Notes under the pieces: model-generated
The model's input: only the letters and a program-made list of their open reading frames with translations
Told to the model about the DNA's origin: nothing
Database searches by the model: none
Shown: positions 33,880 through 42,100 of the stretch, piece by piece
How positions within the stretch are numbered: the stretch's first letter is position 1
Layout of the letters: each line of letters starts with the position of its first letter
Position numbers and translations under genes: made by a program
Source of the DNA: Dimorphilus gyrociliatus
Taxonomy: Eukaryota; Animalia; Annelida
Length of the DNA: 64,000 bases
Assembly (NCBI GenBank): GCA_904063045.1
Contig: CAJFCJ010000006.1
Coordinates: 4,480,408 to 4,544,407 of the forward strand
Direction of reading: 5' to 3'

Positions 33880-35205
33880 ATGCTTCAAACGTGTTCCAAT
33901 CTTGGGTCGAGACTGAAAAATCTCTGTCAATGTCGGTCTGAAGCTAACGATAGCGGTAATAAATACAAAAATATAAGATCGTTATGAAATTGTTTCAGTG
34001 TTTACAAATCCACTTTTTTTTTAATTTGTATATCCGTATTTATTTTATGTAAATATATATAAATAGATATGATATAGGGTCAACGTCGATTCATCAACAG
34101 AGAAGGAGATCTATTGCGGCTGAACATTACGATCCGGAAAAGGATGACGATGGTCCAGCCGTTATCCATCCCAAATCGAAAGAGCAGGAGGAACGTCTTA
34201 GATCAACGCTAAAAAACTGCTTTTATTTTCGTCATTTGGATAGTGATCAGCTAAAATTATTAATAGGCGCAATGTTCGAAAAGAAGGTAGAGAAGACTAA
34301 TGAACTTATCATTAAACAAGGAGATTACGGAGATTATATGTACGTTGTTGAGGAAGGCAAATTTGAAGCGTTACTATTAAAGAACGAAAAAGGTAAAAAT
34401 GGCAAAGCCGAATATGTTAGGACTGTACCGCCAAAAGTTTACGATAACGAAGGCTTCTTCGGGGAACTTGCTCTAATGTATAATACAGTTAGGGCTGCTT
34501 GCATAATTTCAAGATCTCCTGGAAAATTATGGGTTCTAGATAGGCAAACGTTCCGTAGAACAATAATTAAATCAACTCACGAAAAGTTGAAACAATACGA
34601 GGAATTTTTACAAAAAGTTCCACTGTTTAATGAACTAACAAATTACGAAAGAAATAATATTGCATACGCCCTACAAACTATAGAATTTAAAGACAAAGAT
34701 ATCATTTTAAAGCAAGGAGAACCTGGAGATTCAATGTATTTTGTCGAGAAAGGATTGGTAAAATGCACCATAAAGGTAAGAGGGAATGGGGAGGAAGGGA
34801 GGGGTGGGGATATTGCCAAGAGTCCATTATACCGTTCCGCTAATAAAGGAATATTTTAATAGGATAAAATCGAAGGAGAGAAAGAAGTAAGTAAAATCGG
34901 ACCCGGAGGATATTTTGGAGGTAAGATAAAATATACTTCAATTTGCATTATAATTCGACTAAGAACTTTTACTTTTTTAATGCATTACATACTTATATTA
35001 CAAAGAACTAGCTCTCCTTTCTGAAAAGCCTAGAGCAGCTAGTGTTTACGCTACAGGCGATACCAAAGTTGCCAAATTATCCCGAAAGGATTTCGATCGA
35101 CTCTTAGGAAATTGTCAAGATATTTTAAAGAGAAATGCAGAAGCATACGAAAAACAATTACGAAAAGTTTTCGGTTCATCGAAAGATATTGAATCAATTC
35201 TTTAA
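33880..35205 (+). CDS. cAMP-dependent protein kinase regulatory subunit, type II-like, no visible D/D domain
   Basis: Inhibitor site RRRSIAAE; linker VIHPKS; CNB-A FFGELALMYNTVRAACI; CNB-B YFGELALLSEKPRAASV. Exons about 33880-33955 (tentative), about 34078-34775, 34863-34920, 35006-35205. Confidence 0.9.
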
Positions 35206-36166: not shown

Positions 36167-39100
36167 ATGAAAATGGCGGAATATAGAAAGAATCTTAATT
36201 TAAAAGATAATGATTTAGAACGTGTACTAAGTGGACATGTTCGAAATATACCAAAACAACAATCATCCGTTATAAGAATATTTCTAAGTTCAACGTTTAC
36301 TGGTAATTCTAAACTTTAAATAGTTTTTAAACCGTTTGTTTACTGTTGCTAATGTCGCGCGAACATTTTACTTTTTCATTTTCTTCTTTTTTTTCCTATG
36401 TTTAATAATGAGTTTATTGCAAAGAAAAGTTAAATTAAATTTAATTAACCAGATATGCAAGAGGAGAGAAATGTCTTAATGAGAGAAGCTTTTCCACTTA
36501 TAAGGAAATTTTGCATTAGCAAAGGTTTAGATTTTCAAGTTGTCGATATGAGATGGGGAGTAAGGGAAGAAGCCCAAATTGATCATAAAACTACCGAATT
36601 ATGTTTAAATGAAGTAGAAAATTGCAGAAATTTATCAGTTGGACCTTGTTTTGTGGTAAAATAATTCTCTTTTATATAATTTATTTATGGAAATAGTCAA
36701 TCTTTGAAAAGTTTCCCTTTTCAATAGGCTCTTTTAGGCGATAAATACGGCAATCGACCTTTTCCCAACAAAATCAATAAAGATGAAATGGATTTATTAA
36801 AACGTTGCGCTAGAATGGAGGCACGCAATACGAAGTTGTTAGACGAGTGGTTTGAATTGGATGAAAATGCAGTACCAAAAGAATACGTTCTGAAACCAAT
36901 CACATCCATTATTCCTGATTACAACAATATAGATCAACCCGAATTAATGAAAGCGGCGAATGATGAATGGATGGCCGTTTGTGATATAATAACAAGTTTA
37001 TTAAGACATTCAGCAAACTACGCTTACGCTACTGGAAAACTAAATGCTGAAAAGAAACAAAAATATTTTTGCTCTGGTAAGAAATCAAATTCACTTTGAT
37101 GGTCTATGTCTTAATCCGAGCCTGTAGTGATTTCCTTCTTTACGAAGGCGTAACATCTTTTTCATTTTTCTCATTCCCTTCTTCTTCTTCCACTTTTTTC
37201 TATCATCGCAATCTTCCATATCTTCGGGGCATTTACATTTCCACATTTTAGATTTTCTATGTTTCATTTCACTTTCAACGCATTCGGATTTTCCAGGACA
37301 ATCTTTTTCTTTCAAAACAATTCCTCCTTTTTCTATTTTGCAAATGATTGGATGGTAATTCTCATCATCAACATCTGAACAAACTGAAAATCTGATTTCA
37401 GCTGGAGGGGTGCAAACGTAGGGTTCTGGGCACTCCTTAATTACTTTCCTGTAGCCCCTTCCTGAATATTCAATCTTACAAATGCTTTTATTCTTCTGTA
37501 AAAGATTCTGGTTGCGACCCCATTTTTTACTTTTACCGTAAAATCTTGATCTTTCAAAATCTTCGTCCTCATTTTTAATACAATGCCAATTTGTTGAATT
37601 TTTTGGTAAGCATTCCATACCTTCGTCACAGTCATCTTCTTCAACTATTTCGCCAAATTCTTCCAGTTTGCACACTTTATCAGTTGTTTTATTTGCTCCT
37701 TTACAAAAGTATTTTACTTCGGGCGGAGGTAGACAGTCGTGACTGTAAGGACATCTTCTTGTATCGTTAACGGTACCATTTTGAAGTATCACTTTGCAAA
37801 CTCGACGTAAATTCTTCCTATTATGACGTTCTTTTCGAGCCCTAAGTCTCATTTTCATTTGACATTCTTCATCTTCGCTATCTTCGCATTGACATCGCCA
37901 TTTTTCAGCTCTGGGATCTTTTTTATATCTTTCTACGCATTCACTTTCTACGGGGCATTCTGAACTTCGTACAACGTCACCAAATACTTCAATTCTGCAT
38001 AGTTGAGTGATATTTCGGCTGCAAAAGAACAGCTTTACATCTGTTGGCGGTAGGCACACCTCATTTTCTTCACATTCTTTCAGCTCTAATTCCGTTCCGT
38101 TTCTATAGACAATCTTGCATAGGTTGGTAATCTTATGTCTATGAGTTTCCCCAATGCAAAAGCTAGTAAAAAGAGCTAGAAGGACGCTGAAGACGTTCAT
38201 GCTCTCGAATCTTGACGATCACTGTGAAGAAACCCATATTCAAATCCCTATTTATAGCACTTTTCAATAATGGACCAACGCTGATGAGAAATGGAAAACC
38301 CATGAATCATTCAATGGGTCAACTATCGGTCATTTCTTTGTTCAAACAAAGATGCCAAATAGACCAAGCGATGAATAATCCTCAAATAGACACACAATGT
38401 TACATAACTTGCACATGAATGGCATTTAAAAAGGATTTATAGTTCAAAAATAAATAAAAGATAATATTTTCATATTTTACTTTCAGTAACTGAAAACGAA
38501 ATAATACAAGGAATTCTGAAAAACGTTGACGATTCAGACAATAATTGCCTATGTTTTTATAGAACGCTTGAAGATGTTAATATAGATGATCCTTTAGCAC
38601 GTTAGCCCTCATTTCATTTTTTATATTCATGCATGCACTTTTAACAAAGAAACTCTCTTCTTTTATAAGGTCGATTCATTGATGTAGAAGGTGGACAAGT
38701 TGACGTTGACGCCCAAAGTCTATTGCATGATTTAAAAAAATTAACTTTACCCAGCGTCTTTAAATCAAAAAATATTTTTAAATATAACATAAAATGGACA
38801 AAACATGGAGTTGATCCTAGCTACGTCGAACACTCTGAATATTTAGAGCAATTCTGTAAAGATTTTGCAGAAAGTGTTATAGGGCTAATTCGGAGAAAAT
38901 TAGATTCTGATGAGAGATTTAAAACAAATGCTATGATTGCTAAATCTCTTTACTCGGAAATAGTTCATCATTCTACTTTCTGTTTTAAAAAAATTGTCTC
39001 GTTCTATGGTAGAGAAGATTTGTTGAGAGAGGTACAAGACAAATTACAGACGATAAAACCGAATCCCCATTTTAATCAAAACTCTGTTGAGGAGACGAAA

Positions 39101-42100
39101 GAAAAGGATGGAGGAATTTCTGAGGATAGTACTGCTAGTGCAAGTGATGAGGATGATGATGAGACACAAGGGGGCGACGAAAAAGAAAAGATAAATGAAA
39201 CAAAATATGAACACTTGAAAGAAGTTGTTATTGAAAAAGAACACAGCGATTTGCCCCTAGATCACAGTTTGCAGCAAGAATTACTGTACGAGCATGTAAA
39301 TGAATATAGAAAACCGTTAATTCTGCATGGAATTTCCGGTAGCGGTAAGACCGCTTTGATGGCTAAAATTTGCGATATGGGTGAGAAATGGTTTGGGGGT
39401 AAAGTAGTACGCATAATCAGGTTTCTTGGTACTAGTCCCCAGAGCTATAATATTAAAGAAGCACTAATAAACGTTATTCAACAAATATGGTTTAACTATA
39501 GCGTAAATCCTCCATCTGATCTGGACTTGAGTGCAGATTTTTCATACTTGATATTATATTTTGAAGCACTCCTCCATAGAATCGATACGTCCAATAGACC
39601 TCTACTGATTATACTTGACTCAATTGATCAATTAAATTCTGACAATTATGCTCACTCTTTGCAATGGTTGCCTCGATTCATGCCACCTACAGTTTTTATG
39701 ATAATATCATTTATCTCCGATTTTAAAGATTGCCTTGAAATTGCTAAAAGTAGGATAGGAGAAGACGATAGGTGTGTATTAGCTAGGAAATACTTTAATA
39801 ATTGAATAAATATTAAAACATAATCATTTAACCATTCTAAATGAATAACAGATTCGTTGAGATAACTAATTTACCAAAAGATTCAGCTCAAATTATCCTA
39901 GATTCGTGGTTTAAAGTATTTATCTTTAGAAACATTCAAATCTCTTATTTAATTATATTTATTGCTATTGTTACTAGGCGGTTGGAAGGACTGTAACACC
40001 TGAACAAGAGTTATATGTTATTGGATGGTATAAGCAATGCGAACAACCTTTATATTTGAAATTAGCTTTTGAACAAGCTGTCAAATGGTCCTCTTTCACT
40101 CCTAGAGAAGATTGGCGTATTGAAAAGAGTGTTGAATTAAGTATAGAAAGGCTTTTCCGTAATTTAGAAAAAACTCATGGAGAGATTCTTGTCTCTAAGG
40201 CATTAGGTTAAAAAGATAAATGTGTTTGTATATTCAAATAGGCCTTATTATATTCATTTTACAGGATACTTAACCGTTGCACGTAGTGGACTTGCCGACG
40301 CTGAATTGGAAGATATTTTAAGCTGTGATGACGATGTACTTCAAGATTTATATATTCACCATTTACCACCCGATCCTAAGGTTATTATTTAAATAGAATG
40401 TATAGTATTATTTAAAAAAGAGGGAGAATATATCGACTACTACGTAGATATATAAATTTATATATATACATATATGTTTACACACGTATATCTTTCTTTG
40501 TCTTGTTTTGCTTTTTTATTATTGTCTTTTTAATGTTTTTAATAACGTTTTTATAACAATCTTTTGTTTTTTTTTAAAAACACGTCACTATTATTTTCAG
40601 ATGCTAAACTATGTGCACGAATGTTATTATGGCTTTTATGCACTTTACCACTATTTTCTTTGATAAGCTTTTATTTCGTTCTATTTACATTTGGTAAGAT
40701 ACTGATTAAGTTTCAGATAGTATTATACAAGTGTTTTATTAGGTTGTTCGTCTTCCCCCTCTCCTATGGAAGAGAATTCGCCACTCATTAGGAGAATACC
40801 TTGTTGAAAGACGGGCTAATGGAAAGGATGTAGTCTTCTGGTATCATAGAACTTTCCAGGAAACCGCTCAGAAAAGGTAAAGTTTTCTAGTAAGGAAAAA
40901 TAAACATTCTTTTTATCACCCTTATTTACATCCAGGTACGCTTGTGAAGAAAAATTAAGATCTCTCCATTCATCCATTGCCGATTACTTCGAAGGGAAAT
41001 GGGCAAATTGTATCAAGCCTATCGAATTCTTTAAGAAAAAGATCGCAACTTTTTCAGATTGTAGTCGACAATCGCCTGAGCAGCCTATAATGCTCGCTGA
41101 AGGGATATATAATCTACGAAAATTACAAGAATTACCTTTTAATCTTATACACGCACTTCGATTCGATGCATTCGTTAGAGATATTTGCTCCAATTTTAAA
41201 TGGTTATACTCTAAGATAAGGGCAACGTCCATAGACGAAGTTATGTTTGATCTCGATTTGGCTTTGAATGTTATACGAGAATTTCAATTAATGACAGTCA
41301 ATATGGAAACAGATTCATTAAGTGCAAGTAGCTTGATAGAATTTGGCCAAGGCTTTATTAAGTCAAAAACTGCGGTTGAAGACTGCGAACACGAGGTTAG
41401 GAGTTTGAAGAATGCTTTCACTTTGAACCGAGATGTGATTAGGAAAGATGTTAATCATTTAGCGATTGCCGTAAGTTTCTTTTTACTGTCTCAAATATAT
41501 CCATCAGTATTGGTCGTATACCTCTTATTTTCATACTACTACTAGTAGTAATAGAATATTCTGATTAACAGCTTTTAGGGCAGTTCGTCGACGTTCCACC
41601 TCCTTCAAGGTGTTTAGCAGCATTGAAAGAACAGGCTGCAGAATGGGTTGAAAGAGTTAGAATTCCACTTATGCTACCAATTACACAATGCCTTCTTGCT
41701 CCTGGTTTCAATTTATTAATGAATATAGATTCTACAATTTTCTATATGGGAGGTAAATGATATTTGTACAATTCAAAAGCATATTCTTTATAATAATTAT
41801 TATGAATATATTGCAATTAGACCCTAAAAGTAATGAAAGCAAGCTGGTTGTATCAAGCGATCATCGATCATTATATGTTTGCGAAAGAACTCATTCTAAA
41901 GGGGATATAATTAAGATATTCCATTTGGAACAATTAGGAAATGTTGTATCCCTTCCGCAACTCACGAAGACTGTAAAATCAATAGATTTAAGAGGAAAAG
42001 ATGATCAATTTATAAACATTACGGCTTATGACCGACGAGACGAATATGATCCTATCGTCTCAACCTTAATAATTGACCAAAGAACGCAGGATGAGATTCT

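Follow-up and report, generated by a model that had tools for sequence, protein, structure and literature searches.

A conserved gene nested antisense in a NACHT/WD intron of Dimorphilus gyrociliatus encodes a lineage-restricted cysteine-repeat protein that is very probably secreted

RESULTS

Organization of the locus

The subject of this study is a gene nested within an intron of another gene in a 64-kb stretch (64,000 nucleotides [nt]) of the genome of the annelid Dimorphilus gyrociliatus (GenBank assembly GCA_904063045.1, contig CAJFCJ010000006.1, positions 4,480,408 to 4,544,407 of the forward strand), which we refer to as the window and number from its first letter. The assembly totals 77.9 Mb in 349 contigs; the published D. 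gyrociliatus assembly is described as having ~350 scaffolds and a median intron of 66 bp (PMC7854359). The nested gene is a complete, intronless coding sequence (CDS) of 369 codons plus a stop codon on the minus strand (37091..38200), apparent from the list of open reading frames (ORFs), from its orthologues and their substitution pattern, and from RNA contigs. It is a genuine gene, kept at one place since before three related species diverged, and it almost wholly fills an intron of its plus-strand host (37077..38486), an arrangement also present in two orthologous loci (contigs L005 and L006).

The host is an NWD1-like NACHT/WD gene: searched exon by exon, its ORFs match NACHT and WD40 domains. 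Spliced RNA contigs from a same-species library (X2) reveal host introns of 150, 72, 1410, 69, 80, 62, and 58 nt, all with GT..AG boundaries. The long intron is defined by a splice joint at 37076/38487 in an RNA contig, with exactly 1410 nt skipped, and the other six span 58 to 150 nt. Its 5′ flanking exon (36727..37076, plus strand) is supported by the spliced contig and by the orthologous loci and ends 14 nt from the nested stop codon; its 3′ flanking exon (38487..38600, plus strand) is supported by the spliced contig. When the host exons are joined in silico with the 1410-nt intron removed, a single frame stays open throughout. A first-pass annotation made from the letters of the window had proposed an intronless 369-codon ORF on the minus strand, provided with its own TATA box, inside the only kilobase-scale intron of an NWD-like gene, and every element of that proposal is found at this locus.

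Only two open frames in the window are longer than the nested ORF, which starts with ATG. At ~0.076 stops per codon and 35% G+C, the chance expectation for an ORF of such length is ~2e-8 per window.

Architecture of the predicted protein

The encoded protein has 29 cysteines, one at residue 15 within the predicted signal peptide and 28 in the mature part, so the first-pass count of 28 cysteines in three A+B pairs is correct for the mature protein. The cysteines follow the spacing C-x13-15-C-x5-C-x9-15-C six times over, and two of the six modules, B1 and B3, are extended by x-C-x6-7-C. From the N terminus, the putative signal peptide (approximately residues 1 to 19, 38144..38200, minus strand, as are all features of the nested gene given below) is followed by module A1 (4 Cys, residues 28 to 60, 38021..38119, net charge −3) and module B1 (6 Cys, residues 68 to 113, 37862..37999, net charge −6), both of which are delimited by the unit alignment, by cysteines that are invariant among orthologues, and by an AlphaFold2 model. 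Basic linker 1 (37799..37861, net charge +9), whose dibasic pairs are not kept in the orthologues, leads to module A2 (4 Cys, residues 135 to 166, 37703..37798) and to module B2 (4 Cys, residues 177 to 207, 37580..37672), which is without the extra cysteine pair and carries a net charge of −8. Linker 2 (37481..37579, net charge +4) contains a conserved [KR]K-W-G motif and precedes modules A3 (4 Cys, residues 241 to 274, 37379..37480) and B3 (6 Cys, residues 287 to 331, 37208..37342); like A2 and B2, these two modules are placed by the orthologue and unit alignments. The protein ends in a polybasic tail (37094..37207) with 18 Lys or Arg in 38 residues (net charge +15), in which the motifs R-K-M-[KR]-K-M-L and K-E-G-x-x-[YF]-R-x-G are conserved. 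These charge counts bear out the Arg/Lys-rich linkers and highly basic tail of the first-pass description.

An alignment of 12 A+B units (three from each of three orthologues plus the units of a paralogue described below) contains eight cysteines, one Trp, one Lys, and one Pro that are nearly invariant. In a global comparison with hhalign, the A and B profiles align over all four cysteines (P = 0.0012), which indicates that A and B are two alternating subtypes of one four-cysteine module and that the protein is made of six copies of it, each about 33 to 46 residues long. The two extra cysteines of B1 and B3 are always paired, being either both gained or both lost; because they are present or absent together, this pattern suggests that they form a disulfide with each other.

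Residues 6 to 16 form the sole strongly hydrophobic stretch of the protein. In all three orthologues, hydropathy peaks there (Kyte-Doolittle maximum of 2.2 to 2.6 in an 11-residue window, with 2.6 in D. gyrociliatus, versus ≤1.3 elsewhere) although the N-terminal sequence itself diverges, and no second hydrophobic segment was found along the protein with this window. Four N-x-S/T sequons (alignment columns 35, 64, 142, and 202) are common to all three orthologues, strongly implying that the product is N-glycosylated and enters the secretory pathway. Because the hydrophobic N terminus is conserved and is accompanied by these four sequons and by mature cysteines that are invariant and even in number, the product is very probably secreted via the classical pathway, in agreement with the signal peptide noted in the first pass.

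Orthologues, conserved nesting, and selection

A word-based protein search and Logan assemblies of other sequencing runs supplied two orthologues, both of them unbroken, intronless ORFs on genomic contigs. One (P0002) has 361 amino acids (aa) and 58% identity to the nested protein. The other (P0003) has 54% identity and was called at 405 aa, a call that is almost certainly overextended: the true start is most likely Met41, which gives a protein of ~365 aa.

In both orthologous loci (L005 and L006), the nested stop codon adjoins an opposite-strand ORF with 66 to 71% aa identity to the host exon that ends at 37076, and in L006 an ORF encoding NACHT lies on the far side of the nested gene. Because the orthologues adjoin the same host exon, with NACHT beyond in L006, the comparison of loci indicates that the nesting was in place before the three species separated.

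All 28 mature cysteines are invariant across the three orthologues. By the Nei-Gojobori method, synonymous divergence (dS) is saturated at 1.7 to 3.8, nonsynonymous divergence (dN) amounts to 0.18 to 0.31, and dN/dS ranges from 0.08 to 0.13. Identity among orthologues is 50 to 57% at third codon positions and 70 to 86% at first and second positions. Because dN/dS is low and third positions diverge most, the protein is under strong purifying selection.

Promoter and 3′ end

Aligned among the three species, the 285 nt that separate the ATG from the host 3′ splice site contain several conserved elements on the minus strand, despite the saturation of synonymous sites. The TATA box (TATAAATA, 38249..38256), whose TATAAA core is shared unchanged by all three species, lies 56 nt upstream of the ATG. 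An initiator-like CACAGT (38221..38226), of which ACAGT is invariant, is situated ~31 nt downstream of the TATA start, the canonical TATA-initiator distance, and is the probable transcription start. Farther upstream (38281..38332) are TGACC half-sites and a nearly invariant block of ~29 nt that starts with TGATTCATGG (from 38309). The TGACC direct repeat (38332-38316 in the window, 698-713 in L005, and 4991-5006 in L006) has conserved half-sites and a spacer that differs in each species. The pattern TGACC-N6-TGACC occurs once in the window, versus 0.01 occurrences expected, and is also found at the equivalent positions in L005 and L006. TGACC is the reverse complement of xGGTCA, so the repeat can be read as hexamers with 5 nt between them, and in one species both halves are AGGTCA. 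The repeat resembles a nuclear-receptor response element of the DR5 type.

The same region holds two further observations. The first 40 codons of the 405-aa call in L006 (5001-5120) begin at an upstream in-frame ATG and take in both the TATA box and the conserved blocks of the promoter; in the D. gyrociliatus window, a stop codon interrupts the equivalent stretch. A further conserved element, GTTATGTAAC (38399-38408, minus strand; TTTACGTAAC in the two other species), is located ~150 nt ahead of the TATA box and fits the PAR-bZIP/E4BP4 D-box consensus RTTAYGTAAY.

Downstream of the nested stop codon, the first AATAAA (36997..37002, minus strand) is antisense within the host coding exon; it is invariant in the three species, an invariance also constrained by the Leu-Leu codons of the host. 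Because the stop codon lies 14 nt from the exon boundary and the first AATAAA is inside the exon, the nested 3′ untranslated region (UTR) would overlap the host coding exon antisense by ~75 to 105 nt. The contact between the two genes is similarly close in the other two species, in each of which 4 nt are common to the nested ORF and the open frame of the host exon. The antisense overlap at 36997-37076 is a possible route to mutual interference or to double-stranded RNA.

RNA evidence

Two RNA data sets cover the locus: the X2 library and an independent metatranscriptome from 2024 labeled "coral metagenome" (X1). A 1469-nt X2 contig (37047-38515) covers the whole intron at a depth of 23.5; elsewhere in X2, depth is 52 to 97 in host exons and 2 to 5 in nearby nonexonic sequence. 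The X1 contigs at the intron are confined to the CDS (37604-38197), with depths of 6.7 to 8.2, versus 2.1 for a spliced host contig. From the promoter, the conservation of the CDS, and this X1 pattern, we infer transcription from the minus strand.

The X1 sequences are ~99% identical to the window, and of their four differences in the nested gene, three are synonymous and one changes Asp to Gly. X1 transcripts match both the nested gene (37604-38197) and the host gene (39855-40148). A Dimorphilus-like worm probably lived in the coral sample or aquarium from which X1 was made.

A diverged paralogue and the range of the family

Searches with the protein and with unit profiles recover two loci only in the D. 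gyrociliatus genome. The second is a diverged paralogue, which lies on the same contig at a distance of 370 kb (G000:C6, ~4888.8-4890.1 kb, plus strand; L002, ~1414-2793). Its 5′ part consists of a TATA box, ATGAAAAAG, and a short intron placed directly behind the first few codons, followed by a 428-codon ORF; the intron is conserved in another species (L009). The modules of the paralogue are arranged as A-B-A, then a charged linker, then B. The linker, with 103 residues between cysteines, begins as a poly-Glu block and continues as an Arg/Gly/Lys-rich one, and tandem Pro-Glu-Arg-Pro-Glu-Gly-Asp-Lys repeats follow the last B module. The paralogue has an odd number of cysteines (21).

None of the three orthologues has an intron in the nested gene, and one conserved 5′ intron is retained by the paralogue. 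The first-pass annotation had taken the lack of introns to suggest retroposition or de novo origin. Possible origins of the nested gene are a retrocopy, which is conceivable because the paralogue has one 5′ intron and the nested gene has none, or intron loss after a local DNA duplication. A poly(A) tract or flanking repeats are not expected to survive at the present divergence.

Beyond this genome, the first-pass annotation had envisaged a lineage-specific disulfide fold and a search with a profile built from the modules. An exhaustive HMMER search of 1.84 billion cluster representatives with the unit profile returned three at E ≤ 0.001, all belonging to this family: the cluster of nested-gene orthologues, an orthologue of the paralogue (P0004), and P0005. 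The last is a degenerate protein of 144 aa in which the A module is incomplete and the B module is short of some cysteines (L010 3001-3435, L011, L012, and L013); it occurs in the species carrying P0003 and in one further run (SRR31984834), and the D. gyrociliatus genome yielded no counterpart. With relatives turning up only in a handful of related runs, the module family appears, within reach of these searches, to be confined to D. gyrociliatus and a few related species, much as the annotation had anticipated.

Comparisons with known domains and folds

Sequence searches of Pfam, NCBIfam, and PDB with the whole protein and with each of the 12 units gave nothing meaningful. When Pfam was scanned at E ≤ 10 with the same queries, every match fell below its gathering score, the best being PspAA (21 bits against a cutoff of 27). 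Lustrin_cystein appeared in 2 of the 12 units at E ≥ 0.59, EGF in 1 of the 12 at E = 0.023, and a JAG1-like EGF2 in one unit at 0.038, all below cutoff. Among the profiles that did not reach their cutoffs are those of EGF, Kunitz, Kazal, WAP, TIL, antistasin, VWC, Sushi, PTN/MK, TSP1, and Lustrin_cystein.

The AlphaFold2 model of unit 1, built from the 12-row alignment, has a mean predicted local distance difference test score (pLDDT) of 83.6 and a predicted template-modeling score of 0.54, with eight beta-strands forming two hairpins per module. A Foldseek search of PDB with this model gave no match at E ≤ 0.001 (snake three-finger toxins appear at E values of 4 to 6), and VIA realignment of the best Foldseek matches gave no Z ≥ 2. 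In the VIA-wide comparison, the best match is Argos (3c9a; Z = 3.7, root mean square deviation of 1.6 Å, 40 of 91 residues, 12% identity), and IGFBP (2dsp) and CART reach Z values of 2.0 to 2.5, on a scale where unmatched models typically reach 7 to 8. A structure search of the atlas with the unit model gave a best template-modeling (TM) score of 0.39. Judged on this model, the unit would have no recognizable structural neighbor; low scores are expected for a small, elongated two-module model, and a new fold is not thereby proven. These sequence, profile, and fold searches, several of which had been proposed with the original observation, are consistent with its suggestion of a possibly novel protein whose cysteine spacing does not match EGF, Kunitz, Kazal, WAP, TIL, antistasin, or VWC.

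A candidate relationship to the arthropod families DUF4789 (PF16033) and GD_N (PF16030) was also rejected: the ESM Atlas score of 0.76 lies within the range of shuffled proteins, the TM score is 0.39, and hmmscan gave no match to either family at E ≤ 10. The ESM Atlas model itself is poor (pLDDT, 0.48).

An ORF just upstream of the host (34236-34859, plus strand) has F-G-E-L-A-L-type motifs of the kind usual in cyclic-nucleotide-binding domains, as in a PKA regulatory subunit.

DISCUSSION

Nature and likely role of the nested gene

Our best overall explanation, held with somewhat more than even confidence, is that the locus contains a genuine, expressed nested gene for a secreted, nonenzymatic extracellular protein with a binding, scaffold, or matrix role. 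In this scheme, the disulfide modules, being rigid, would provide spacing or recognition surfaces. The targets of the basic linkers and tail would be polyanions, for example the sulfated glycans found in mucus, in the egg capsule, or in adhesive secretion, or else microbial surfaces. The linkers and tail may also pair with the acidic modules of the protein itself in electrostatic self-assembly. The much larger block-polyampholyte linkers of the paralogue suggest the same kind of mechanism.

Two kinds of known proteins offer parallels. Midkine and pleiotrophin (PF01091 and PF05196) are composed of small all-beta disulfide domains with Lys/Arg-rich tails that bind heparin-like glycans; the nested protein has a comparable combination of disulfide-bonded, apparently all-beta modules and basic tail, and polyanion binding of the same kind is what we propose for it. 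It differs from them in the number and spacing of its cysteines and in having six modules instead of two, and Pfam gave no match to these families at E ≤ 10. Taxonomically restricted, secreted cysteine-rich repeat proteins, which include the adhesive and cement proteins of flatworms and annelids, with Lys/Arg-rich regions, as well as egg-capsule and mucus proteins, resemble it in having a signal peptide, tandem disulfide modules, N-glycosylation, charged low-complexity linkers, and a narrow range. No relation to such proteins in sequence or fold was found, however, and with two genes per genome there is no expanded family.

Several points weigh against the explanation that we favor. We infer the polyanion-binding or matrix role from composition alone, and hydropathy was the only basis for calling the signal peptide. 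At full length, the AlphaFold2 model, built from a 5-row alignment, reaches a pLDDT of 49, which is too poor for use. The restricted range of the family is bounded by the sensitivity of HMMER and by the taxa that have been sequenced, among which there are few genomes of dinophilid or interstitial annelids. Lastly, the contigs of both X1 and X2 are unstranded, and the X2 contig spans the entire intron and reaches 260 nt beyond the inferred start on the upstream side, so that a retained host intron could supply part of its depth. This last point is what might be said for there being no independent gene at all, only a chance or decaying frame with RNA from the retained host intron. We regard that as extremely improbable given a dN/dS of ~0.1, cysteines invariant in three species, a conserved core promoter, X1 coverage limited to the CDS and higher than that of the host, and the negligible chance expectation for such an ORF. 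The first-pass claim of a real nested antisense gene stands, with orthologues, purifying selection, promoter conservation, and the unstranded RNA contigs in agreement.

The alternatives that accept the gene differ over what its product is. The first-pass annotation named mucus, adhesive, cocoon, antimicrobial, or toxin components as candidate roles and suggested possible cleavage at dibasic sites into two-module peptides. In such a propeptide model, proprotein convertases would cut the linkers to release three peptides of two modules each, which would serve as a toxin, an antimicrobial peptide, or a hormone-like ligand. The repeat unit is indeed an A+B pair, both D. gyrociliatus linkers contain several RK, RR, and KK pairs, and [KR]K-W-G is kept in linker 2 of all three orthologues. 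Yet linker 1 of P0002 has zero dibasic pairs, those of P0003 are at other positions, and there is no conserved R-x-[KR]-R furin motif; KK and RK, moreover, are poor convertase sites, and the paralogue's charged low-complexity linkers of >100 residues are unlike spacer peptides. With no conserved site in linker 1 and [KR]K-W-G alone in linker 2, the proposed cleavage is poorly supported across species, and we consider a propeptide quite unlikely. We assign an equally small chance to an immune effector, that is, a secreted cationic antimicrobial or microbe-binding protein that is perhaps coregulated with its NLR-like NACHT/WD host. The position of the gene inside a NACHT/WD gene and the net charge of +15, with linkers as well as tail carrying charge, would suit such a role, as would the finding that expanded families in D. 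gyrociliatus are mostly immune related (PMC7854359). Against this, the strong purifying selection on one copy plus one paralogue differs from the rapid turnover that is typical of immune effectors, and an amphipathic, antimicrobial-type tail helix was dropped from consideration when its hydrophobic moment did not exceed that of shuffled sequences (P = 0.33, 0.64, and 0.11). To our knowledge, vertebrate NWD1 has not been established as an immune sensor.

It is also unlikely, although slightly less so, that the module is a divergent form of a known small disulfide domain (EGF-like, three-finger/Argos-like, or IGFBP-N-like), in which case the family would be old and no longer recognizable. Canonical EGF-like domains are spaced C-x(2-7)-C-x(4-5)-C-x(5-12)-C-x-C-x(8-13)-C. 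B1 and B3 resemble EGF (PF00008) in having six cysteines that include C-x5-C...C-x-C-x6-7-C, a beta-hairpin core, and a tandem, extracellular arrangement, and their extra cysteines are gained or lost together, as an EGF C5-C6 disulfide would be; the isolated EGF and JAG1-like EGF2 matches and the VIA-wide rows for Argos, IGFBP, and CART point in the same direction. Nevertheless, the spacing in B1 and B3 (C-x13-C-x5-C-x13-14-C-x-C-x6-7-C) is outside the EGF-like pattern: the first loop, at 13 to 15 residues in the nested protein, is about twice as long as that of EGF, and four of the six modules have only four cysteines. EGF chains are absent from the VIA-wide matches at Z ≥ 2 and from the Foldseek matches, a weak negative given that small domains score low. 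The resemblance to Argos and the three-finger (Ly6/uPAR-like) proteins lies in disulfide-pinned beta-hairpin "fingers" in secreted ligand-binding proteins, but the CC...CN signature of three-finger proteins is absent, only part of the model aligns, and Z is at noise level, with 3.7 far under 7 to 8. Nor do the units have in common any Pfam family at a meaningful E value, all matches being below gathering score, and neither Foldseek nor realignment yielded a significant neighbor.

A more ambitious combination of the results can be sketched, and we consider it doubtful as a whole. The A/B module would be a disulfide-rich domain of two hairpins, not described before, with its origin among the dinophilid annelids. 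A secreted material of these interstitial worms, such as mucus, adhesive, or egg capsule, would be built in part from the products of the nested gene and of its polyampholyte paralogue, with acidic modules pairing with basic linkers; the conserved direct repeat of nuclear-receptor type, located in the host intron, would drive expression; and nested gene and host would be coupled in their expression through the obligate 3′ overlap with the host coding exon.

Significance

Nested intronic genes are common in animals, and this one resembles others in lying wholly within one overlong intron, in opposite orientation and with its own promoter. It departs from ordinary nested genes in that the host intron is almost filled, the 3′ UTR must enter a host coding exon, and the arrangement is kept in three species. 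Orphan cysteine-rich secreted proteins are likewise common, and current understanding of neither phenomenon is overturned. What is new is a lineage-restricted cysteine-repeat family, and it survives the tests that were run: it adds, with good support, a family of secreted proteins that is narrow in its taxonomic range, evolves under purifying selection, and has a disulfide module not yet classified, in an organism whose genome serves as a model of genome compaction. As a small intronless gene with a compact, conserved promoter of <300 nt and one paralogue, it should be easy to study experimentally, and its conserved, intron-filling antisense arrangement offers a clean natural system for the question of interference between nested genes and their hosts.

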